Shown one piece after another: positions 1-52,376 of a stretch of 64,000 nucleotides of DNA. The stretch is taken from positions 27,218,001-27,282,000 of the forward strand of contig CM097886.1 in NCBI GenBank assembly GCA_044892525.1, in the 5' to 3' direction. Both the position numbers and the translations under genes were made by a program. Each line of letters opens with the position of its first letter. The stretch's first letter is position 1. The DNA is from Schmidtea polychroa. Lineage: Eukaryota. Below the pieces are notes generated by a model. That model made no database searches and was not told where the DNA came from. It saw only the letters and a program-made list of their open reading frames with translations.

Positions 1-1981
1 TAAATACACATTGCAAATAACAAGAATATGTGAAAACCACATTTCAGTGAATTGCAATAAATTTAAGGATTTCCTATTTAACAATAATAAATAATAGAAA
101 TAAATAATAATAAATAATAAATAATAAATAATAGAAAAAAAAGATAAACAGAAAATAAATGACTATAATGATTAATTTAAATTTAGCGTATTTATGTTAT
201 TTAAATTAAAAATAAAATATTTTGTTTTAATTAATTCAAATTAAAGAAAAGTGATCATTATCAATACTATGTGATTGAAAATGACAGGCGAATAAATTTT
301 GTTTAATGAATTTTTAATTGATAATATATAAAATAAATAGTAAAAATAGAAAATATCTGCGAGAGAATCTGACAAAAGGCATTTTAATTTGATCAATATT
401 AATATTTATTTAATTTTAATATTTTTATGATTTGTTATCATAGAAAAGCTCACCGATGAGTGATTTTTTTCCGACCCCTTTTGGAATTATGAATTGATTT
501 GTACCACTGTGTGTTTCTTTTATAAATATTGATCAATTTTCAACTTATAAAAAATATCTAATTTTTCAGTTGTAGTAAAATTTATAAACTATTGGGCAAT
601 GTTGGGTAAATGACGAATGTTAATTTAAATAATCAAAGGAAATTTGCATAAATGTTTTAATTGGTTTCTTCAAGGAAACTAAGATAGTAATATCTGGAGA
701 AAAGGGCAAACATCAAATATGTTGATGAAGTCTGGGGGAAAAAGGGAAAATTGAAAATGAATAGGAAATGTTATTAAAGAATATCTCGAAGAAATTCAAA
801 TTGGTTGGGCGAAATTAGACAGATTATTCATAGCCGTGTTATTTATTTATATATTTTTTTATTAAACTATATCTTAAATATAAGGTTAGTTATATTGCAT
901 ATTATATCCCTCTTACAGTATTACAAATTATAAAGACAACAATTTTGATAATTAACAGTTTGCATTTGGATTTATTATTTTTTTCTTGAAACACTTGAAA
1001 CACTTTTTTCTGAATGTTGAAGTATAACCACTATATACAAAGATAATATTTTATTACAATTTATCTGTCCAATCCACTCAAATAGAGCTAATGGCGAAGA
1101 AATAATATCGTCTTTTACATCTACTCAATTGGCACCATGAATTTAAAGAGTAACGTTTTTATACAATCGATCTGTCAATTTCATTTCACTTCAAGAGATC
1201 TATTAATGACTGAACAACTTTTAGAAGTTTTAGAAGTGAAACGTCATATTTAAAATTTCATCTAATAAAAAATTATAGTTAAAATTAAAATTATAGTTAC
1301 AAGAAATAATAAGCATATCAATAAATGTTCACAAGTATAATTTTATTCATTGTTTCGTTAATTTTTTTGAAGTTGTCTATACGTTAATAAAATATTATCA
1401 ATAATTAATGAAAACATTTACTAAATATTTGTTTGATTAAATGACATTCAAATAATAGTAAATTTTCAATATTAATTTATTGAACAATATTAGGGAGAAG
1501 TGAGTTATCTAGTACAGTGCGTTCTGATTGACTGAATAATAGCATGACTCATCCGAATGATGGCTCATTGGATGTCATGAGTTGGTGGAAATTTATTAGG
1601 TGAGTCAAGAAATTTAATTTTTATGATCATAATTTTCATTGTTTTTTAAAAAAAATATATTTTCAATGTCTTTTTAAAATAGTAATAAATTTGTTTTTAT
1701 ATATCGTGATTTTAATTGTAATTGTAATTTTTTAATTCATTTTTTTGTATAATATCATTGTTTCTTTAAAATATATCGTTCATATTCGGAAATCTCCCAT
1801 ATCTTGTATATCAATTGAAAGAAAAAGTTTAACAATATACTTTTTCTAATTTTGAATTCTCGAAGTATTTGTAGTTTGAATCGTTTAAATTTAAATATTT
1901 TCAAAGAATAATTCCAAAATTCATAGTGAATACAAGCTTACAATTATTACTTATGTACAATTGTTTCAGACCCAAATAAAC

Positions 1982-1982
<1 letters not shown>

Positions 1983-2049
<67 letters not shown>
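1983..2049. repeat. (TAT)n microsatellite
   Basis: Perfect ATT/TAT trinucleotide run; it produces the spurious poly-Ile ORF at 1901..2083. Confidence 0.97.
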
Positions 2050-2054
<5 letters not shown>

Positions 2055-2443
2055 ATAATTTTTATTATTATCCCCATCATCATCGTAATTTTAAATAAAA
2101 TACTTTAATAAAAATAATATATAATAATTTTGAAATAAATTGCAGATGAAGAAGTATAAATTACCCATTAAAATATTATTCATGGAGTTATGAATTATAC
2201 AAATCACTCTAATATTATCAGCAATTTACAAGTCAATTTAATCAACTTCCATTGTATTTATTCGAGTCTCTGCATCTAAGCTGTAGTGTAAAAAAGAAAG
2301 ATTTATTCAGATTTCATATTTAAAATAACAAAAACAAATTGAAAATTTAGATAATTTTTAAATTAATTTTGAATAAATCTTCAATAATAAAATATTTAAT
2401 TAGATCTATTTTATTTTATAAAATTATTATATATTATTTTGTA

Positions 2444-2529
<86 letters not shown>
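2444..2529. repeat. (TAT)n microsatellite
   Basis: Perfect trinucleotide run; it produces the spurious poly-Tyr and poly-Ile ORFs. Confidence 0.97.
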
Positions 2530-2530
<1 letters not shown>

Positions 2531-2542
2531 TCTAATAATAAT

Positions 2543-2993
2543 CAGGGCCGTAACAAGGGTGATGCGAGCGGTGCAGTCGCACAGGGCGCACATCTGAAAG
2601 GGGCGCAAAATTGGAACGTAACATTTTTTTAATGTTACCAAAAAATAACGAAATAGAAATAAAAGAAATTATCAAATGACATGCACGAAAAAAACGACAC
2701 ACTAACTAGTTTATCTTTAACATTGCTGATTGGACTGGTCGCTAAATGTGCCTTCGTAGGTATGTGTGTTTTTTGAAAAATGTTAGTCCACAAAATGGGC
2801 TCCTGTCATTTTTTCAATTAGCAACAGAATTTTAAGAGCATTACTACCTATTATAATAGCTGGAGATGAATACATAGTTAACAATCTCAACATGAATATT
2901 ATAATTATTATAGTAGGCTAATTTGAATTCGGGTTTTAGGGGCACCAGATATATGAACCGCACAGGGCGCAATAATGCCTTGTTACGGCCCTG
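2543..2993. mobile_element. hAT-type MITE (451 bp)
   Basis: Perfect 16-bp TIR CAGGGCCGTAACAAGG / CCTTGTTACGGCCCTG. 8-bp TSD ATAATAAT (2535-2542 and 2994-3001), although it lies in low-complexity AAT sequence. Subterminal CACAGGGCGC is repeated. Confidence 0.9.
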
Positions 2994-4505
2994 ATAATAA
3001 TAATAATTTATTTATATTTTAACACAACTAATTGACATAGGATATAGAGTGTATTTGTAATATATATGAGAAGAAATTAATTATTCAAAATTTTGTCCCT
3101 TGGTTACTTAAAGACATTACCTTCTTGTAACCAATCATGAAGCTGATTTCAGCGATTATTACAAGGATTGGCGTTTAGTTAAAATAAATGTTGACTTAAA
3201 CATAAATTCTCAAACAGAAACAATAAAAATGTTTTTAAGATCTTAGAATAGATCCAATTCAAAAAGTCAAAGAACTGATGACTGGAAAATATAATTTATC
3301 GAAGTCCTGGAAAAAGCTTATTCTGAAAATTTCAAGTGATAAAACATAAAAATTTTTACAAAATCATATTTTACATTTTTCAAAATTTTATTCAATTATT
3401 AATATTTAATTTAATTAAATAATTAATTAATAATTAATAATGAAATTAAAAATTTTAAATTCATTTAAGAATTTTTAAAAATTTAAAATAGTTCATAGAT
3501 CAACAATCTAGTTTATTTTTCCTTTCAATTGATTAATTATTCTTACAGTGAATATTATTTGCAAATGGAAAATTAATTATTTATAAAATCGATAATTAAA
3601 TTTATTAACCAAATGTGAAATTGCGAGCTTATAATTTGCTAAATTAGTGTACTCATTTCATACTGTACAAATCCAATAAGTTTCATTTGACTGAATTTCC
3701 CATCCATAATTGACAAAATTTTCATCTATTTAATTAATTAATCAATTAATATTTTTATGAATTATTTATTAAGACTTAAGATTTCAGAGATGAACTGAAA
3801 GTTAATAAATATTAACTAGTGGGGGAAGGCCGATTCTTAGGTTTAAGTAATTTTGTGTTATAAATTGTTATAAAATCTACCAATAGCCTAAAAAACTAAA
3901 CTAACTATTGCTTTAACCCAGATGTTGCCAAAACTATTTTATTCAAAAAATTTTATTCTTGCACTATCATAGAACTAAATACCGCAGTGTATACAAAATC
4001 AAGAATAAACAAATAAGTTAACTGGTCAAGACTTGTAATTGTGATGTGCTAAACACATTCTTATTATAGATATCTCTAAATAACTAGCGTAACTTAAAAT
4101 TATAATTTCGAAAATTATTTTATGACATTAAAAGATGAAAGCTTTTGATGAAAGGTCATCTTTCTTATGAACAGTAATAAAGGGATGCAAATTTTAAAAA
4201 AGATATGAACAATTATTGCTAATTATTACAGAGGGGCGATTGTCCTTAAACATAAAAATTCTAAGTGATTATAAATGATAATACCCCTCGATTAAATAAT
4301 AAACGAAATTCAATAATATCAAATTTATTTTTTAATTTATTTTATTTTTAACAAATGTGGTACATAACACAAAAACTTTTACATATTAGTGATTACTTCT
4401 GGTATTCCAAATATATTTAAAATTCTGATAATTATTTAAATTTCCATTATGTAAATTAAAATTTTTGAAATTATTTGAAATTTTTTAAAAATAAATCTTA
4501 AAAAA

Positions 4506-7322: not shown

Positions 7323-8255
7323 GTGATGAGCATTTTATCATTTTAATTGAAAATCCACCATTTTTATTTGTATTCCTTTAATCATAAGCAAAACTGAGCA
7401 TTTGAAAAAATAATAAAAAATGTAAAAATATTTTTTATTTTATAATATTTTTATTGCAGAGTAGAATGTTTGTGAGTTATACAAAATTACATAATAAATA
7501 TACGAGTCTCACGGATATCTACAAAAATTGTAATAAATTGATAAATTAATTTATTTATATAAAATTTTATATATTCCTACAACCAAATCAATAAAATCAA
7601 TAAAATCAATATAAAATAAAAATTCATATTCACAATTCAAAATAATTATTACTTGACTGTAAAAATGCCGGTAAAAAATAACTACAAATTGTGTTTTTAT
7701 TTAAAAATATTATGAAAGAACCCAAATTTTATGAAAGCGACAATAATTGCGCGGGGAATTCGATTGAAAGGTTTCCCGGTTTTGCAATAGTTCTAAAGAA
7801 ATAGTTTTATGAAATTTTGATAGTGGAATAAAGTTGTAAATGTAAATTGAAAAGAATTACTTTATAATATATATTCATTATTACCATTCGAATTCGAATG
7901 GTTTGTTAGGTTTAAGAAATTCTTATTAGACAATTTCTCACTTGGACAACCAAACACTAAGTACCATTTGTATGGGCGCAGGGTCCAGCTTCAACATTTA
8001 GGTAAAATAAATATTTGCACTTAAACATTGAACCAATTTTCGCAACATGTTTTCTATATTCCTTATGATGTCATTAAAATATCAGCACTTTGTAAAATAT
8101 CAAAATTTTGATTAACAGGAAATATTTCGCATAGTTCTTGATAAAAAAAATTTCTAATGGATTTTGATAGAAGTGAAGCATAATTTTTGAATATAAGTAT
8201 AAAAATTTTCAAGAAAAAAATATAAAATCAGCAATTTTAAAAGATTTTCAACTTA

Positions 8256-8421
8256 ANNNNNNNNNNNNNNNNNNNNNNNNNNNNNNNNNNNNNNNNNNNN
8301 NNNNNNNNNNNNNNNNNNNNNNNNNNNNNNNNNNNNNNNNNNNNNNNNNNNNNNNNNNNNNNNNNNNNNNNNNNNNNNNNNNNNNNNNNNNNNNNNNNNN
8401 NNNNNNNNNNNNNNNNNNNNN
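8256..8421. other. Assembly gap (others at 22231-22374 and 48758-48943)
   Basis: Runs of N. Confidence 0.99.
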
Positions 8422-8426
8422 CTTAC

Positions 8427-8921
8427 TTGAGCACTTTTACTTTTTTCTGGATTTTCCATTAAATCCCAAATTTGACTGCGAAGTTTTGCGCATCTTCCGT
8501 TAATGTTTTCCGGCTGATAGTTAAGTTTGTTTAAATAGATTGCTTGAACTTTATTATATTCTTCTTTTGATATATCGTATTTCAAATTGTAAATATAATA
8601 ACAGCAACTCGACATCAAAGATTTATCAATACCCCAATATTCAAAATCCTCCGTCAAACTCATGACGCACATCGTATTCGTATCGTAGAGAACTCCAAAT
8701 TTCAGTAGATGAAGAATTGTAGTGAAAAATTTCGGATGTCTATCAAAGAAATATTCCTCTATATCTGCCTGGAAATCATCACAGTATTTTAGAATTTGTT
8801 GCGAAGTTATTGCCGAATAAAGTCGACACAAACGAACACTGTAGGCTCTTTTTAATATACTCTTCCATGAAACTTTAAACAATTGACCTCCTACATTTAG
8901 ATTTGCAATTTGAAAATGCAT
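8427..8921 (-). CDS. Voltage-gated K+ channel, Shab/Kv2-like: N-terminal T1 (BTB) domain exon (partial gene)
   Basis: LNVGG...LCRL...YCDDF...EYFFDRHPKFFTTIL...MCVMSL.EDFEYWGID...SSCC...LRSQIWDLMENPEKSKSAQ matches Kv2 T1 through the pre-S1 segment. Ends at a GTAAG donor (8426-8422) just before an N-gap. The start is uncertain (ATG at 8921 used; the frame is open to 9077). Confidence 0.85.
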
Positions 8922-10632
8922 ATAAAACGAATTTAACAAACCATTTAAAAAAATACTAAAATTAATTAAAATGCAGAGAGGAAAATGAAAAATATAGTAA
9001 TTAGTTAATAAGCGGAAATCGGATTGGTTGAAAATTGTTAATAATTTATTTCGATTAGCAAGCAATGGAAAAAGCATGGAAAATTATTATGCAAAATTCA
9101 TCAACCACATCAAATTGTGCCTGTTGAATAATTTTATTCCTATCCAAAAATGTTCTAATTTGAAATGGAAATTGCATTACAATAATCATTTAATTTTGTC
9201 AATAAATGTGGATAATTATTTTTTTGTATTATAATGTTTTTTTCCTATATGTGTCTATCATGTCCATCTGATTGGGCTTGAAAACGGTTGTTTCGAAAAT
9301 TCGTGTTAAATATAAATAGAAATTATTATCTAAGAAAAAAATGAAATAAAAGAAATCGATAAAAAGGTCATTGGTGTAAGAGATAAAATATTTTAATAAA
9401 ACTGAAAATCTTTGAATTAATTATATTTATTTAACATATTCAGCGTCACCGACCTCATATGAGATTTCTATTAAATGCTGTTACAATTCCAATGGTAACA
9501 ATCATAATTAAAAGATAAAACAGTTCAAAGATAATCGTCATAAAATCAACCATAAAAACATGGTTTTTGAAACTCTCTATATTAATTTCAACATATTTGA
9601 GATATAATCACGTTATCTCTTTAATCCGAAGTTAATGAATAGATACGAATTTATATTGAAATAAGGAAATAATGCTAGATTTGACATATCAATATTTTTT
9701 AAATTAACCAACTTTCCGCGATCGGATCAATCTGAAATTTTGATAGCGTGCAGTGTTCCTGACAACAAATCTACTTGCCAAATTTCAGCTCAATCCGATC
9801 ATGGAAAGTAGGTTAATCTGGGCTCATAAAATTTGCATAGAACATACAAACATAATTCAGCGAAGTTAATAGAGACGGTAAAAATGAACTGAACTAAATT
9901 GAGTTTCGATGAAATTACTGAAGTCATTCTAAAGAAAAGTTTAGAAATAATTAAGTAAACGGGATGATTATATGAAATTTCATTAGGATAAAGATGAAAG
10001 GACACTTTCTTAAGTATGTGACATCACATCTGACAATGATTAATTTGTTAATATGTTACTTTAGAACTGACATCGACTCAAACCACGTCGAGCTCATCTA
10101 AATATGTTGGATATATAACGGTTTTAGTAGGAAGAAAAATTCTAAATCTGCCTTGTGTTCAATAATCAACAATAAAGATCGAACGATATTGAAACTTTAT
10201 TTGTTACTCAATTTCATACTACCTCTGTTCAAGTCAATTAACAACAATATTAAAATAGCCCAAACAGACTGGCAAACTGTTTCCAAAAAGGAAATATCGG
10301 GAATTCACATCTTCTTGGTGAATTTGAAACTGTTTCATTATTTTGTCTCTTCAACCTTTGTCAATTTTATTTCGTTATTCACCCAGAAAAAATAATATTT
10401 GGAAAATCTACCTGACTTTATATAGGCTAATTGTTCAGGTCAGGCCAAATCTTTCATAAATTAAACACAGTTATTTTGTCATTTTAAATGTTTTGTGTTT
10501 GTCAAAAACAAAATTTGTTTATCCTATAGCAATGATCTATGAGTATAGAATTTTTTAATTAATTAATTAATTAATTAATTTTATCAGATTTTAATTTTCA
10601 ATAAAATTTTACAAATATTTTTTAATGAACAT

Positions 10633-13600
10633 TTAAGTTTTAACATCTTTCATGGCTGATTTGTAAATTTGAATATCCTCTTGGAAAACCTCTAAAGGAT
10701 GTCTTGTCCATCCAATAACTTCTCTTATTTTATCAACATCACTATCTTCATTTCCGGATGTACTGAAGTCCGACTGTCCGGAATCAAATGCATATCTGGC
10801 TTCAAAATAGTTACTAACATTATCCTGTTGTATTTTCAACTTTGTCATGAAGCAAACTAAACAGCTTTTCCCGATATCTTCAAAACAATCTGGACAAAAT
10901 TGACTGAAATCTTCTGGACAAACAAAAAATCCTTCTTTTTCTAAATCTTCACAAATGAGACATCTGTATTTACTAAAGACTTTAACCCAATTAAAAAAGT
11001 AGGGATAGTCACGGCGTAAACTTAAAAGAAAACTGTATTCAGCTTCCAAACGATTTTGTTGAACTTTGAAGATGATGATATTTTTTTTTGACCTCATATA
11101 CCGTTGTCGACCTAATAATAAAGTGTTGTATAAATGGACAATTCTCTGACGTTCTCTTTTTGGATAAAAGTAACCACAAATCACATGTCGAGATCTAGCC
11201 AAATAGCCATTGGATAGAGTTAGAATGTAAATTATGATCGACGTTATCATAAACAACCTTTTATGGAAGTCAGAGACTTGCCGGATATCTGGCGCACAAT
11301 CAGCAAGGCTATAGGTTATATTAAATCCTCCTAAAGCTTTTACTTCTTCCAGTACTGTATCAATCAAATATTTAATAAATCCATCCCCACTCGCAGTAAT
11401 ATTGAAAAATTCATCACCTTTTATAGTCAACTTAATAAGACTTACGTCTCGTATAACGTCGAGTGCTGTATAGAATACTTCTGCAACCAGAAACGTCGTA
11501 AACAGTGAGAGAAAAATCGCTGTAATTTTAATGAAATCTCGGATGACTTTGCTAATCTCTTCGGAGGTATAGAAATTTTGATTGAATAGAACCTTCTTTC
11601 TTTCATAGCTTTTCAACGGTAATAAACTTGTCCTATTCACTAATTTCCGTTGTTTGTCAATCAGTTGAAAATAATTTGTTATATATTTGTTGTCATAGTC
11701 GATGTCGACTAAATATTTCTTACAATACGAAAACGATCGGAAAATGACCAGCATCAATAGGATCTTCAACACGACCAATACTAAAATGATCAAGTCAACC
11801 AGTAGAACTACAGTGTCGGATAAAGTAAATGTAAGCACCGCTGTTCCATGTAATACTGCATCACCATTTATGTTGAATTTCTTTCTAGTAAACATCCAAG
11901 TGACATTAAAATCAAAGATCTCGTTCATAGCAGCAACGCCACTTTTTGTACCCTGATGCATTCCACCGAATCCGTCTTTAGTATTAGCCGCCTCTTGTTC
12001 GTTGGCACATTTTTGGGATTTTTCTAATGCCTTCTGAACATTGCAAGACGAATCCGAGTCAATTTCACTGTAACACATGTCTTTTAAACTAAATCCAAGA
12101 TTCAAGGAGCCCATTATTAAGTTTTGCATTGTTTGGCAAGCCGTTCCAATTGTTTTCTGACAAATTTGGGTTTTCATTAATTCAATGCTTGAGCATCCAC
12201 TGAACATTTTTGTTCTCATTTGACTAGAGATTAGACTACTTTTATTACTAAAGACATCTTTATACTCGTCGATGACTACCATACTCTTTTTAAATTGTTC
12301 CTCCAATTCTTTATATTGACTTCGTAATTTCTGAGTTTTCTGTTGGAATTTTCTTTGTTCACTTCTATCAAGTTTATGAAGCAATTTGGAAAATTTATTT
12401 TTCAGATTTATTTCCCTTGTCAAATTTCCGTTTGGTATGGCTGCTCGAATTTGTTTGGATTGATTGGCCGAATTGTCAATTTCATTATTTATAGGCTTAG
12501 AAGCATTGTAAACTTCTAAGGTTGATTGCTTCAGTTTATTCGAAGACTCGATAGTGTTTATAAGCAATCTTTGCATTGGATTGATCGCGATCCTTTGAAT
12601 GTCTTTTGATATATTTAACGCTACACCCATTGAACAATGAAGTGATAACATCACGGCTTGTATATTTCCAGCAATACAAGCCAAGGGACCGACAGCGGTT
12701 ATTCTTGCCAATTCCGCCATTAAAAACGCTCTTCCAGCTTTCATTCCAAGATTCGGTATCAACAAAATTGCAACTGTGCGAAATTTCGTAGATTTGATGA
12801 AAGCAAAAGTGAATGATACATACGTTGTATAATAGATTACATCAACTAAAGTTGTCGACACTTGAGACTGACCTTCAATTGCAGTGGAAAAAGCTGTGAG
12901 AAATAAATTCGCTATCTGGGAACCGATAAAGGCTTTCGCAAAAAACCGAAAAACTACAACAGTATATGGTGGATCTTCGTCAAAAATCGCTCGTTCAACT
13001 ATTGGAAAGTATGTCTTCAAAAGCTTTTGAATGAAGGTCGTGGCGTAGATTTCTTTGACATGTCGTAAATATGGTGTTCCTTCAATTACTTTTCCAATAA
13101 GGTTTGTCTTTTCTATTTGGGTGCGCCTTTTCATTTGATTGAATTGATTTTCTTTGGTTGGTGGGACTTGCAGCGGAGTTCCACGAGACTGGAGTTCCAA
13201 ATGCCTCGTTGGGATATATGATGTAAAAGAAGCAATGCCTATATTTTCGCCATAAATTCCTTGGATCATTGTTTTAATTGATGTTGAAATTAAATGAAAA
13301 ATAATAATTATCGAAATTTGTAACATTAAAAGCAAAACAGACAAAACAATTTCTGTAGTTAAAGCTCGAAAGATAATATTTTCAGTAAGTCTAAATCTAC
13401 AACCTTCATTATAATATCTTTTTAATGCACTTGGGTCATGTTTTGGACAAATTATGGTTTTCGCTCTATCACAACAACTTAAAGGAGCCAACGCGACCAA
13501 ACCAGGTTGGTTAAGGTATTTAAAATTTGCTAGCTCATAGTAATCAACTAAAGAAACCCATTTAATGTTAAACCAGTCAGTCGGTCCAGTCACTCCACAA

Positions 13601-14097
13601 CACTTTGTTCTTTGCTGCATTTTATCTATCATATCCTTATCGAAATTGTAATCAACATTCTTCGAGTAACTATCATTTTTTCCATAAAACCTCATCCTTG
13701 CGTAAAGCTTATGTTGTATATCTGTCTGTAAAAGCCCGATCCCATCAATCATATGAAGAATTGCTGAAATGTTCAATACTATAAAGATACAATGACACAA
13801 ATAAATTGGTCGTATAAATTTCCATAGAAGTCTCCTCGCTTTGATATTAATAAAAAGTCCAAAAAGAAGCATTGAGGCTATAGCCAAAAGAAAGCAGTCA
13901 AGACTGACACAAGTCATACATGACAAAAGGGTATCATAATATTGCAGCTTCAGGTATGCAGCGAATTCATAATTCATTGGCATTAGGGGCAAATGAAGAA
14001 TTAGTAAAAATCCACTAAATAATATCAGACAACCTGAAAAAGCTAATCCACAGTAAATTATTAAAGTCTGTCTAACAACATCCACTTTGATAGCCAT
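10633..14097 (-). CDS. Intronless fusion ORF, 1154 aa: peripherin/ROM1-like tetraspanin (about aa 1-290) + DCST1/DCST2-family DC-STAMP protein with C-terminal C4C4 RING-like domain
   Basis: N-terminal part: four hydrophobic segments and an EC2 with IDKMQQRTKCCGVTGPTDWFNIKWVS, APLSCC, EGC (PRPH2-like). C-terminal part: FRTVAILLIPNLGMKAGRAF..GPLACIAGNIQAVMLSLHC, DIDYDNKYITNYFQLIDKQR..LLPLKSYE, YFYPKRERQRIVHLYN, and CLIC..CPEDFSQFCPDC..CLVC, all DCST1/sneaky-family motifs. One uninterrupted frame. Confidence 0.92.
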   Translation of the reverse strand: MAIKVDVVRQTLIIYCGLAFSGCLILFSGFLLILHLPLMPMNYEFAAYLKLQYYDTLLSCMTCVSLDCFLLAIASMLLFGLFINIKARRLLWKFIRPIYLCHCIFIVLNISAILHMIDGIGLLQTDIQHKLYARMRFYGKNDSYSKNVDYNFDKDMIDKMQQRTKCCGVTGPTDWFNIKWVSLVDYYELANFKYLNQPGLVALAPLSCCDRAKTIICPKHDPSALKRYYNEGCRFRLTENIIFRALTTEIVLSVLLLMLQISIIIIFHLISTSIKTMIQGIYGENIGIASFTSYIPTRHLELQSRGTPLQVPPTKENQFNQMKRRTQIEKTNLIGKVIEGTPYLRHVKEIYATTFIQKLLKTYFPIVERAIFDEDPPYTVVVFRFFAKAFIGSQIANLFLTAFSTAIEGQSQVSTTLVDVIYYTTYVSFTFAFIKSTKFRTVAILLIPNLGMKAGRAFLMAELARITAVGPLACIAGNIQAVMLSLHCSMGVALNISKDIQRIAINPMQRLLINTIESSNKLKQSTLEVYNASKPINNEIDNSANQSKQIRAAIPNGNLTREINLKNKFSKLLHKLDRSEQRKFQQKTQKLRSQYKELEEQFKKSMVVIDEYKDVFSNKSSLISSQMRTKMFSGCSSIELMKTQICQKTIGTACQTMQNLIMGSLNLGFSLKDMCYSEIDSDSSCNVQKALEKSQKCANEQEAANTKDGFGGMHQGTKSGVAAMNEIFDFNVTWMFTRKKFNINGDAVLHGTAVLTFTLSDTVVLLVDLIILVLVVLKILLMLVIFRSFSYCKKYLVDIDYDNKYITNYFQLIDKQRKLVNRTSLLPLKSYERKKVLFNQNFYTSEEISKVIRDFIKITAIFLSLFTTFLVAEVFYTALDVIRDVSLIKLTIKGDEFFNITASGDGFIKYLIDTVLEEVKALGGFNITYSLADCAPDIRQVSDFHKRLFMITSIIIYILTLSNGYLARSRHVICGYFYPKRERQRIVHLYNTLLLGRQRYMRSKKNIIIFKVQQNRLEAEYSFLLSLRRDYPYFFNWVKVFSKYRCLICEDLEKEGFFVCPEDFSQFCPDCFEDIGKSCLVCFMTKLKIQQDNVSNYFEARYAFDSGQSDFSTSGNEDSDVDKIREVIGWTRHPLEVFQEDIQIYKSAMKDVKT

Positions 14098-14409
14098 TAT
14101 ATAAATAAATAATTAAAATAATTAATATAAATAATGAGAATAATTAATAAACATATTGATAACATTATATCTGCAATTATTTTACTACAGAAAAATGTCA
14201 TTGGACCCCTACACCAGCCTAAAAGACAAAGATCTACATCCGACAGTTCTTGTGGATAATTCGTTTGAAATCAGATTTTTTGAAACTACAACAATTTCTT
14301 GGTGTCATGAAGACTTCCTATGTAATGGTATTGATAGAATTTTTGTTGCACTATTTCAATGAACTAAATTTTAATATGGATTTTAATAAATAAAACACAT
14401 GGTCATCGT

Positions 14410-14660
14410 CAGTGTTGAAGTGGAGACGGTGTCACCGGGAGTGAAACACTGACTGGGATTTCCATGCTGGTACTTTGCACTGGTGACAAAAAATTCCAAT
14501 TTAGTAATAATAAAGTATTGGTATAATATTGCTGATAATATTGCTTTTTTATGTATTTTAAATTACTTGGTGGGGGTAGGGGTGTTGTGGTGTGTCACCG
14601 GTTAAAATTAACAATTTAAAATTCCTAGAACATATAAAAAAGTTTACGACTTCATCACTG
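14410..14660. mobile_element. hAT-type MITE (251 bp)
   Basis: 12-bp TIR CAGTGTTGAAGT vs CAGTGATGAAGT. Perfect 8-bp TSD GTCATCGT (14402-14409 and 14661-14668). Confidence 0.92.
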
Positions 14661-28505: not shown

Positions 28506-29042
28506 TTAAAAATTATTTACTAATAAAACTTCTTTTAATAAACTTATTAATTTACGTTCTATCACACCATTTGTAATATGGTGTAATGAACTTGAAAAGC
28601 ATAGTGTAATTCCCATTGATTTTGTAAAATCTTTCATCGTCTTAGATTCAAATACTTTTCCACAATCTGTGTGAATTTCCTTTGGTGCTCCAAATCTAAG
28701 AATCCATTTTTGTAGTATTGTTTCCTTCACTGTTTCCTCATCCTGTTTAGCGACAGCAGTCAGAGAGATATATCTGCTAAATTGATAAATTATTGCGATT
28801 ATATATCTTTTCTTTCTGAATGTTTCCGGTAATGGGCCAGATATATTAATGCAAACTTTCTCCCACGGTTCCTCTGCTGCCAGTTTCATTGTCTCTTCCT
28901 TCACCTTTGTTGTCATAACTTTCGTTCTTTGACATGCCTCGCATTGTCCAATTGTTTCTTTTGCTGATTCTTTTATGTCTCCCATATCGTAATTGTCCGA
29001 TACATATTTTGTCACCTTTTCTGTTCCTGCATGTGATAACAA
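28506..29042 (-). pseudogene. Gypsy integrase fragment (HHCC finger remnant + core)
   Basis: LSHAG..CEACQ; PWEKVCINISGPLP..YIIAIIYQFSRY..WILRFGAPKEIHTDCGKVFES. Confidence 0.9.
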
Positions 29043-38459: not shown

Positions 38460-39026
38460 ATGGCTGCTTTTAATGAGGAAATTTATGAAGCAAACAATAT
38501 GATCGAGGATAAATGTTCTTTTGAATCTGATAACGTCAATGGTGTTTTTGGCCAACTAATATCAAATTTATTTGGTGGATTGTTTGCCGTTGGTATTCGA
38601 GGCAATAATTGTGATGCAGTAGCTACACAAAGAAAGGTTCCAGATAAAATGATTGAGAAGAGTTCAGCTACAAGATTGTTTAATATTACTGAAAGTACTG
38701 GAGGTGTTATGACTGGTATGATCCCTGATTGTCGATCTCAAGTATGTCGTACACAAATGGAAGCAGCTCGATTTAAATATAAAAATGGATATGAAATGCC
38801 TCGTGACATAATATGTCGTTGTATTGCGGATATTAATCAGCTTTACACCCAATCGGCTGAGATGCGACCATTAAGTTGTTCAATGATGGCAATGATGGCT
38901 AGGGGTGAAGTTTTCTATTCTAGTGGTAAAAAGCCTAAAACGTCTAACACGACTGTTTCAAGCAACCGACGGTATATACCGCTTGGGTCAGACGCGTTGG
39001 TGCTGTACAAAGCGGCGAATGTATGA
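38460..39026 (+). pseudogene. PSMA6: Chimeric ORF containing a proteasome subunit alpha type-6 fragment (homology about 38574-38905)
   Basis: GGLFAVGIRGNNC..TQRKVPDKMIEKSSATRLFNITE..VMTGMIPDCRSQV.R..EAA.FKYKNGYEMP..IADINQLYTQSAEMRPL aligns by eye to PSMA6 residues ~33-137. The flanks are unrelated and there are non-conservative substitutions. Confidence 0.85.
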
Positions 39027-50167: not shown

Positions 50168-52376
50168 CTAATGGGAAAAACTACATTTTTTGTCACTTGC
50201 CAGCTTCTTAAAATCCGGTTTGAATAATGTTATTGCAATGCGCAAGCAGTGTTCCAATTTCTTACATCCTAAGCGCATTCTCTGTTTGTTCATAATAATG
50301 TTCATTGTCGAGAATGAGCTTTCACAAACATACGTTGAAGCAAACATGGTGAGTAGAGTTAATGCGATTTCACGAACAATCGGGTAACTGAACGCCGAAA
50401 GTATCCAAAAACTTCCAGGCTAACTTGTTTATCTTGTAACTGCGTCTTTAAATCCCCATTGCTTTGAAGATCTATAAGCTGAAGCAAGAAAGTGCTTTCG
50501 TCAATCCATGTATACGTTTCAGCAGCTACACGTGCAATACATCTTTCTTTACCGAGTGAGAAAGGGTTTGTAAGGAACAGGAGCAAAGTATCGTTAAATG
50601 TGAAGTTCTCAAATCGCTGTTTAAAATTTACAATCAATTTTCGAATAAAACAACTCATTTTAGCAACACATTCAACATTCAAATTAGATTTTGTTGCCTC
50701 TGCGAGGGTTGGAAAATGTAAAAATTCCCGACTTTCAATATCTTGTTCAAAAAATATTAGCTTATAATATTAGCTTATTAGATTATAATACGTTATAATA
50801 AAGATCGGCAACATTGTGTCCTCTTCCCTGCAACTTTGTGTTCAAATCGTTCAGATGGCCAGATATATCACATAAAAATGCAACATTCATCTTAAACTTA
50901 TCATCATCAAGTTTCTCTTTGAACACTGCTGCCTTTATTAATTTGCTAGTCGACAAAAACATTTTCACTTCGTCTTGTAGAGACCAGAGTCGTTGAAGTT
51001 TACTGAGCCATCTAACGTCATTGTGTGCTAATAAATCGCCATATTCAGCTTCAGTAAGAAATGATTTGAAAAGTCTATGTTGGAGTGATGAAGTTGATCG
51101 AATAAAGTTTATAAGTTTGATTGCGCTAGACATAGTATCAGCTAATTCTTCTGATAGTTGAGCGCACAGCACAGATTGGTGTATTATGCAATGAATTGTT
51201 GCAATGCATGGATTGTTATCAGCAAGCCTTTTTGATAGCCCATTCACTCTGCCATTCATGGCTGGTGCTCCATCAGTTGTCAAAGAGACCATTTTTTGCA
51301 AGTCGATTTGATTTTGAACAAAAAACATATGTATTATTTCGTTAATATCATTAGCTCCTGTGTGCTCCATCAGTGGCAGTAAACATAACAATTCCTCATA
51401 AAAGACATCTTTATAAAGAAACCGAACGTAAACGGCCAATTGTACCACATCATTTCCATCGGTTGATTCATCCACGGCAATTGCATATTTATCCACTGAT
51501 TTAAGCGCGGAGCAGAGGATCTCGAATGATTCCTCACCTAATATATCCACCCGTCGTCCGGTGGTCGTGTCTGATAGTGGAATGGTGTTGATAGTCGAAA
51601 TTATCTGCGCTTTTTCATTATCGCTAAATACTGAGTCTATTACTTCCCGCATACATTCTTTTACTATTTCAGCATCACTAAATGGTTTCTTATTCTTTGC
51701 AAGAGTCCATGAAACTCTCAGGAAGGCCTCCATTGCTCGTTCTTGATTCGATATGCTTTTTGTTAATATAAGTCGTGCACGTTTTAATGAAGATTGAATC
51801 GATTTTATTTTATCACGCCTGATAGTGGTATTTGGTGGGTATTCTTTCTCAAATTTGCTGTGCTTAGTTTCAAAATGTCTTTTCATATTCGACACTTTGT
51901 AAACTGCCACGCTTTCGTTGCACAACAAACAAACAGGTCGACTTCCAATTAACGGTATAACAAACAAAAATTTGTCTGTCCATGAATCATGAAATACTCT
52001 GTTCTCTGAATCAACTTTACGGTTACTGTTCATAAGTGGCATTGCATTCTTTAATTTTTTTAATTACAAAAAAATCAATTTTAATGTATTAATAAAATAT
52101 TTCAAATTGATGCGAATCTGCATTCAAAAATTATGGGGTAAGCAAGAAATGTATATCGCTTAAATATATTTTTTAAAAAACAACAAACCCATATTAGCTG
52201 ATCTATTTTAATACGCCTTAAGGTCAAATATTATACATAAAAAAGTACCTGTGCGCTTTTATGCAGATATCACCAAATATTTTTATATATGTGTAATATT
52301 CCAAGATATTGAAAGGGCCTTTTTCAAATTTCGGCGGGCTTGATCAGGCCCGCGGGCCGCCAGTTGAATATCCCTG
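50168..52376 (-). mobile_element. hAT (SPIN/Buster/GTF2IRD2-like) transposon: 5' TIR and frameshifted full-length transposase; 3' end lost
   Basis: TIR CAGGGATATTCAACTGGCGGCCCGCGGGCC ending at 52376. ORF 50783-52042 has CLLC..RHFETKH, IAVDESTD, TTDGAPAM, IHCIIHQ and VRWLS. It continues via 50359-50682 to MFASTYVCESSFS..FSH* at 50168. Confidence 0.93.

Follow-up and report, generated by a model that had tools for sequence, protein, structure and literature searches.

The window, that is, the whole stretch of 64,000 nucleotides analysed here, comes from the genome of the flatworm Schmidtea polychroa (GCA_044892525.1, contig CM097886.1, positions 27,218,001 to 27,282,000). Its most prominent feature is a gene on the reverse strand, at 10633..14097, whose product of 1154 aa appears to combine two known membrane proteins in one polypeptide. 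These are a peripherin-like tetraspanin at the N-terminus and, after a hydrophilic linker, a complete orthologue of the sperm protein DCST1/Sneaky. All parts of the gene described below are likewise given on the reverse strand.

Reading frame and DNA support

The coding frame of this putative tetraspanin-DCST1 fusion protein (10633..14097; 1154 aa plus stop), identified from the open reading frame (ORF) listing of the window, Pfam matches and DNA contigs, starts with an ATG, is free of stops and requires no intron. Upstream of the ATG the frame stays open for 5 codons only, giving a total of 1159 aa. The window is AT-rich, with a GC content of about 22-40% and approximately 30% overall, and its second-longest ORF within the 64 kb is 419 aa; a frame of 1154 codons against a runner-up of this size at such a base composition is therefore far beyond chance.

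Contigs of four DNA sequencing runs of the same species show zero differences over the gene, with one contig running unbroken from 10588 to 14526 and so spanning the linker. These four runs belong to one study and are possibly the source data of the assembly itself. Apart from spikes at repeats, their contig depth is even over the gene and the adjacent DNA, which supports the sequence and says nothing of expression. As the contigs are identical across the junction, at the DNA level the linker contains neither a stop nor a mis-join. A prior interpretation made from the letters of the window (the sequence-only reading) had described a single stop-free, intronless frame of 1154 aa and had named a stop or mis-join in the linker as one finding that would overturn it. 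The former is borne out by the ORF listing, the translation and the DNA contigs, and the latter was absent from the contigs of all four runs.

The polypeptide is predicted to cross the membrane ten times, with four transmembrane (TM) segments in the tetraspanin, six in the DCST part and a cytosolic linker between them. This topology follows from both ends of a tetraspanin being cytosolic, the number of DCST TM segments being even and the C-terminal finger being cytosolic. The proposal of compatible topologies in the sequence-only reading, with a cytosolic tetraspanin C-terminus joined to a cytosolic DCST N-terminus, is consequently sound. An AlphaFold2 (AF2) model of the whole protein has a mean predicted local distance difference test score (pLDDT) of 68.7. 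Local values are high in the membrane and DC_STAMP regions of DCST but low for the tetraspanin and linker.

The tetraspanin module

The tetraspanin module spans aa 1-282 (13252..14097) and, from Pfam, hydropathy, AF2 helices and flatworm homologues, is composed of a short cytosolic N-terminal tail, TM1-TM3, a large extracellular loop and TM4 (~aa 243-270/282). The Pfam Tetraspanin profile (PF00335) matches aa 18-266 with 49.1 bits against a cut-off of 32.1, and hydropathy places TM1 to TM4 at approximately aa 12-34, 62-84, 95-117, and 243-270, so that the first extracellular loop is small and the second large. Four long helices together with short helices in the large extracellular loop (EC2) are present in both AF2 models, one made of the whole protein and one of the module alone, the latter being of low confidence (pLDDT 55.8).

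The EC2 loop (aa ~118-243; 13369..13746), as delimited by translation and alignments, possesses six cysteines in the arrangement C165-C166-G, D-W, P-L-S-C207-C208, C216, and G-C232. The translation reads TKCCGVTG, APLSCC and NEGC at the corresponding sites, and the loop fits the tetraspanin pattern CCG--[DN][WY]--PXXCC--C--GC (PMC2965184). Four elements do not vary among ten flatworm modules: the CCG, the tryptophan of D/N-W, the S-C pair of PxSC and the cysteine of the closing GC. The overall identity of these modules is just 17-21%. The four-TM tetraspanin with intact EC2 cysteines (KCCG, PLSCC, EGC) that had been proposed for the front of the protein is thus upheld by Pfam, hydropathy and translation, and the pair of profile matches expected for the ORF, Tetraspanin and DC_STAMP, was found with each over its curated Pfam cut-off.

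Constraint on the module was gauged by protein-level identity between sister species, which serves as a proxy for the ratio of nonsynonymous to synonymous substitution rates. Schistosoma sister species share 93-95% of module residues and mostly 95-97% of those in the DCST part, with one pair at 78% in the DC_STAMP region; the corresponding values for Trichobilharzia are 92% and 89-94%. By this measure the module appears as conserved as the DCST part, barring the one lower DC_STAMP-region value. Along the query, occupancy and identity among the fused homologues also stay at a similar level from the module through the linker and over most of the DCST part. No other copy or free-standing paralogue of the module was found in this genome.

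Relationship to peripherin-2 and ROM1

When the first 300 aa were compared with all PDB sequences, the best matches were peripherin-2 (7zw1_A; E-value 4.5e-7) and ROM1 (1.5e-4), with CD63 and TSPAN15 at approximately 0.1. The profile of ten flatworm modules gave the same order against this set, with E-values of 2.8e-20 for peripherin-2, 1.2e-14 for ROM1, 4e-10 for CD63, 4e-5 for TSPAN15 and 1.8 for CD81. Alignment reveals a KCCG..G..DWF.I.WVS stretch and a PxSCC motif common to the module and peripherin-2/ROM1, and the neighbours of aa 1-300 in a protein atlas carry the names 'peripherin-2-like' (Arthropoda), 'Tetraspanin-3' and 'ROM1a'. The '6-cys-a' cysteine pattern, as in the module, is listed for RDS among others, and RDS orthologues are reported from invertebrate deuterostomes, with no reliable protostome orthologue listed for the RDS lineage (PMC2965184). 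The label 'peripherin/ROM1-type' of the sequence-only reading is supported in so far as E-values from both the single query and the profile are best for these two proteins. On the basis of sequence profiles, the module may be called peripherin-like, which stops short of a proven RDS orthologue.

Peripherin-2 (PRPH2/RDS) and ROM1, the tetraspanins of photoreceptor disc rims, are hence the closest solved relatives, with the DWF stretch, PxSCC and the '6-cys-a' pattern in common. However, identity is only about 20%, and the EC2 of the module is shorter, with six cysteines. Furthermore, where peripherin has a long cytosolic C-terminal tail, the fusion protein has the linker and DCST1 instead. The egg tetraspanins CD9 and CD81, which are needed for mammalian gamete fusion, resemble the module as tetraspanins at the site of gamete fusion, but they are separate proteins that act from the egg, facing the sperm machinery in trans, whereas the flatworm tetraspanin would act in cis, being covalently joined to a sperm-side factor. 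With the module profile, as given above, CD81 was matched only at an E-value of 1.8.

The DCST1 part and a separate DCST2 gene

The DCST1/Sneaky-homologous part (aa ~356-1082; 10852..13032) appears complete from Foldseek matches, the names of HMMER matches and its position in a tree. With Foldseek, query residues from ~315-356 to 1082 align with residues 25-710 of mouse DCST1 (E-value 1.2e-27) and residues 2-691 of Sneaky (2.9e-26), and the same region covers residues 3-684 of human DCST1. DCST2 (4e-19) and DC-STAMP (4e-10) were matched lower, the range for DC-STAMP/OC-STAMP being 1e-8 to 1e-10. Word-index protein searches with the whole protein, the module alignment and the fused alignment returned no matches, while HMMER, run exhaustively over 1.84 billion representatives, yielded 656 relatives. 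The best of these outside the flatworms are named DCST1 or sneaky and derive from a scorpion, a barnacle, wasps, a weevil, a bedbug, a lamprey and a starfish.

The genome (781 Mb) has exactly one further DC_STAMP match, an intronless ORF of 788 aa without a tetraspanin (L001:1039-3405, reverse strand). This ORF is also located as G000:C3:38427173-38430745, reverse strand. Its best scores are with DCST2-named proteins and it falls within a DCST2 clade of 100% support. As it sits on another contig, this DCST2 orthologue is not a neighbour of the fusion gene. The window protein lies outside the DCST2 clade, and the DCST1 proteins form a grade which the tree does not resolve (support 27), so its assignment to DCST1 depends on which proteins match it best and on its position outside DCST2. 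Sequence comparison accordingly points to the window gene being the DCST1/Sneaky orthologue, with DCST2 as a separate gene. A complete DCST-family protein after the linker, as had been suggested, is confirmed by the full-length Foldseek match and the whole DC_STAMP profile; the earlier label of DCST1/2 holds for the family and is here refined to DCST1/Sneaky.

In its layout of TM segments, its cysteine-rich helical ectodomain, its DC_STAMP domain and its C-terminal finger, this part of the protein is of the same type as mouse and human DCST1, Sneaky and SPE-42, and as in such systems there is a separate DCST2 gene in the genome. Compared with DCST1/Sneaky, the fusion protein has approximately 355 additional N-terminal residues, namely the tetraspanin and linker, and an Asp in place of the fourth Cys of the finger. 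The gene itself is single-exon here and does not lie beside DCST2.

Six TM segments of the DCST part were read from hydropathy and model helices at approximately aa 380-405, 418-440, 466-484, 763-785, 858-876, and 948-966. Between the third and fourth lies a predicted helical ectodomain (aa ~485-762; 11812..12645), with long helices in the AF2 model and cysteines C488, C635, C646, C675, C685, and C697 in invariant or near-invariant columns of alignments A1 and A3. The DC_STAMP domain (PF07782; aa 801-990; 11128..11697), also detected in the six-frame search of the genome, scores 119.2 bits against a cut-off of 25 and covers profile positions 1-191 of 191.

Linker, finger and tail

The linker (aa ~283-355; 13033..13251) is hydrophilic, is predicted to be cytosolic and is mostly of low confidence in the AF2 whole-protein model, where pLDDT falls below 50 at aa 276-313 and 332-353. 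It carries basic clusters, and every fused homologue has residues in this region. When a complex of the module (aa 1-290) with the DCST part (aa 355-1060) was predicted, the score was 0.00, which gives no verdict and is evidence neither way on contact between the two.

Towards the C-terminus there is a cysteine-rich, zinc-finger-like domain, predicted to be cytosolic (aa 1046-1082; 10852..10962), with the alignment columns C-x2-C ... C-P-x-D ... C-x2-C ... C-x2-C. The residues C1046, C1049, C1060, C1068, C1071, C1079, and C1082 are invariant in the fused alignment A3. At the fourth position every finger-covering flatworm sequence has Asp, with one exception: the full-length protein of Macrostomum (P0088) retains Cys. 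The finger of non-flatworm DCST1/Sneaky proteins has eight Cys. Asp is able to bind zinc. The C4C4 RING-like ending of the sequence-only reading must therefore be corrected: the finger has seven Cys, and its fourth ligand position is taken by an Asp that the clade conserves. This C3-D-C4 finger (C-P-x-D) appears from the alignment to be a clade marker of flatworm DCST1. The protein ends with an acidic, poorly conserved tail (aa 1083-1154; 10636..10851) of low pLDDT, with an occupancy of 0.32 and an identity of 0.04 among the fused homologues.

The fusion in other flatworms

Both Pfam domains, Tetraspanin and DC_STAMP, were detected in a relative of 1129 aa (P0001) and in proteins of Paragonimus, Echinostoma, Trichobilharzia, Calicophoron (an N-terminally truncated model) and Taenia solium, while the Tetraspanin match of Macrostomum lignano (27.9 bits) is under the Pfam cut-off. 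The module profile additionally matches proteins of Schistosoma haematobium, S. bovis, S. curassoni, S. intercalatum, and S. margrebowiei (E-values 1e-35 to 1e-38) as well as of Fasciolopsis and Dicrocoelium. In all, the fusion was found in Macrostomum, the tapeworm Taenia and seven fluke genera, amounting to more than ten flatworm species besides the source. The same fusion in related species, which had been named as a check on the original observation, was thus recovered by Pfam, the module profile and the tree, and the fusion is real and widespread among flatworms.

P0001 is the top HMMER match and aligns with query residues 1 to 1084. Its source is a contig of 3,681 nt from run ERR14224704, on which the ORF occupies 213-3602 with short flanks, an arrangement that resembles a transcript. 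In a protein atlas, the cluster 'DCST1 family' has 50 members, all with DC_STAMP (100%) and 70% with Tetraspanin, and Platyhelminthes is the sole phylum recorded for it. Among the 199 proteins scanned with the module profile, no non-flatworm protein contains the module, and it is likewise absent from every non-flatworm DCST within the 150 best representatives. Six long non-flatworm DCST matches (P0081, P0121, P0133, P0136, P0148, P0141) were considered as further candidates and rejected, as they have no tetraspanin and their extra parts are other domains or apparent merged gene models.

In the tree the query groups with all fused proteins in one clade, with a Shimodaira-Hasegawa-like approximate likelihood ratio test (SH-aLRT) support of 99, within which Macrostomum branches first, followed by P0001, the query, and then Taenia together with the flukes. 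The clade and its branching order suggest that the fusion arose once, at the base of Rhabditophora or earlier, and has been inherited since. The parasitic classes are thus nested inside the clade, and the query takes its place with the free-living flatworms.

Entries with the same architecture are already deposited, examples being those of Paragonimus westermani (KAF8572061.1), Echinostoma caproni (VDP83715.1), Trichobilharzia regenti (CAH8826299.1), Taenia solium (KAL5966444.1), and Macrostomum lignano (PAA57369.1). They are only 19-25% identical to the window protein, are encoded by multi-exon genes where checked, and bear automatic names such as 'E3 ubiquitin-protein ligase DCST1', 'DC_STAMP domain-containing' and 'unnamed protein product'. 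Domain-architecture listings will therefore show the Tetraspanin and DC_STAMP pair. The Taenia solium locus has an open frame of 509 codons (L006:3064-4590) that extends from the CCG motif past TM4 and across the linker to take in the first TM segments of DCST. The deposited model KAL5966444.1 (MIEF01007207.1) splices out 29 stop-free, in-frame codons of this region (L006:3343-3429) which hold the 'GC' motif of the tetraspanin, and this intron is probably wrongly called.

Seven Schistosoma DCST1 proteins of 1197-1198 aa carry the module (P0009, P0152, P0156, P0160, P0161, P0163, P0165; profile E-values 1e-35 to 1e-38). Pfam Tetraspanin gave no match even at an E-value of 1 in P0009 and P0152, the two scanned. 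Models of 793-935 aa exist beside those of 1197-1198 aa, and the schistosome annotation of this gene is consequently inconsistent.

Within 8.4 million openly searchable papers and preprints, nothing was found linking DCST1 with flatworms and no description was found of a tetraspanin and DC-STAMP in one protein. The accessible parts of a DCST evolution review and of the SPARK preprint likewise make no mention of a tetraspanin-DCST architecture. The remark in the sequence-only reading that the architecture is not known to have been described holds for papers found in this scope; it does not extend to databases, where the fusion is present under automatic names and widespread in flatworms.

Other features of the window

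A very high-copy repeat lies at 9499-9896, just downstream of the fusion gene. Contig depth there is 11,000-350,000, whereas in these runs the gene itself has 15-260, and many loose ends and short alternative joints are present. On the same strand as the fusion gene and 1.5 kb downstream of it there is an ORF of 274 aa (8253-9077, reverse strand) with a BTB_2 domain, the BTB type of potassium-channel tetramerisation (E-value 7.5e-19). Two mobile-element remnants are present: an integrase-core (rve) and H2C2 zinc-finger fragment at 28506-29042 (reverse strand), and the 419-aa ORF at 50783-52042 (reverse strand), which possesses a Spin-doc zinc finger and DUF4371 and resembles a transposase-derived protein. 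There is also an open frame at 38460-39026 (forward strand) with a proteasome-subunit domain (PF00227, E-value 7e-21), which is probably a single exon of the gene for such a subunit.

Proposed function and alternatives

DCST1, a multi-pass membrane protein, and DCST2 are sperm proteins required for gamete fusion in mouse, fish, fly and worm and described as a heterodimer, according to PMC8989947 and a 2026 preprint (10.64898/2026.05.13.724128). In the preprint the pair is proposed as an ancient fusion core with a hydrophobic tip that inserts into the egg membrane. DCST1 in an ancestor of the rhabditophorans probably gained a complete peripherin/ROM-like tetraspanin at its N-terminus. Judging from orthology, the fusion protein may be made in spermatids or sperm, where its DCST1 part would pair with DCST2 as the core of the fusion machinery. 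The tetraspanin part, from its likeness to peripherin, may oligomerise in cis in the manner of peripherin-2/ROM1, organising or curving the membrane, and could in this way concentrate DCST1/2 in a fusion-competent patch. Both ectodomains, EC2 and the cysteine-rich helical region of DCST, would then face the egg, with the linker and finger remaining cytosolic. Overall, the protein is considered with good confidence to be a flatworm DCST1/Sneaky orthologue fused to a peripherin-like tetraspanin and acting in sperm-egg fusion, and the doubt in this reading lies almost entirely in the functional part.

A number of observations weigh against it. A transcript spanning both halves, expression in the testis and a role in fertilisation are all inferences of this analysis, and when sequencing runs were searched with the gene and its junction, RNA-labelled runs of the species contained no match, the matches being DNA runs of one study only. 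The peripherin link appears in sequence profiles and not in the fold searches. In Foldseek against PDB the module model found nothing significant, PRPH2 being top at an E-value of 0.45, and against Swiss-Prot the top 30 were all tetraspanins, none significant and peripherin not favoured. The module model is poor and these searches are unspecific, leaving the link without support at the fold level. Finally, peripherin oligomers are linked by intermolecular disulfides made by an extra EC2 cysteine, C150 of human PRPH2. The EC2 of the module (aa ~118-243) has six Cys, with none just before the CCG where a seventh would align, so that polymerisation in the style of peripherin is not assured.

One alternative is that the locus gives rise mostly to two products, a separate tetraspanin and a separate DCST1, through an internal promoter or start or by cleavage of the linker, the covalent link being transient or minor. 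The linker, of low confidence in the model and with basic clusters, would accord with this, as would the absence of any trace of the gene from the RNA-labelled runs and the coexistence in databases of Schistosoma gene models of 793, 929-935, and 1197-1198 aa. However, both this genome and Taenia, from lineages that parted long ago, keep the frame open at the junction, and the linker is occupied in every fused homologue. In addition, the whole fused ORF of the 1129-aa relative lies on a single 3,681-nt contig with short flanks as in a transcript, and a cytosolic linker would be beyond the reach of secretory-pathway proteases. Production of two separate proteins is therefore regarded as unlikely.

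It may also be envisaged that the fusion protein serves in somatic cell-cell fusion or membrane shaping, for example in the neodermatan tegument or in embryonic yolk syncytia, paralleling DC-STAMP/OC-STAMP in osteoclast fusion. The DC_STAMP family does include somatic fusion factors, and the Foldseek matches extend to DC-STAMP/OC-STAMP (E-values 1e-8 to 1e-10), but the protein is closest to DCST1/Sneaky and not to these two. A DCST2 orthologue is co-present, as in animals with the sperm-specific pair, and the fusion occurs in free-living flatworms without a neodermatan tegument. Such a somatic role is judged quite unlikely. An artefact, whether an assembly mis-join or a chance read-through of two neighbouring genes, is rejected as extremely improbable, its only foothold being the common origin of the supporting DNA runs in one study, which are possibly the assembly source, against 1154 stop-free codons at about 30% GC, contigs of four runs identical over the junction, and the same architecture in more than ten other flatworm species together with the Taenia open frame.

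Taking the protein as a sperm-side DCST1 orthologue joined to a peripherin-like tetraspanin, a broader proposal can be made in the sense of a 'Rosetta stone' fusion. A peripherin-like tetraspanin may be the ancestral bilaterian cis-partner of the DCST1/2 core, covalent in flatworms and separate elsewhere, for example as the 'peripherin-2-like' proteins of arthropods. This has a slim but real chance of being correct. If true, curvature made by a tetraspanin would be part of DCST1/2 fusion, and the flatworm protein would point to a missing sperm-side component of fertilisation.

Significance

No animal fertilisation factors are more widely conserved than DCST1/2. Tetraspanins also recur at fusion sites, but are known there as separate, egg-side proteins. 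The retention across a phylum of a peripherin-type tetraspanin joined to DCST1 would be natural evidence that both activities cooperate in one membrane. It predicts a tetraspanin partner of DCST1/2 in other animals and a role of membrane curvature in fusion. Current flatworm annotations hide the tetraspanin half of these proteins. Flatworms amenable to RNA interference, namely planarians, Macrostomum and schistosomes, permit a direct test, and in the parasitic flatworms the fusion protein may provide a lineage-specific handle on fertility.

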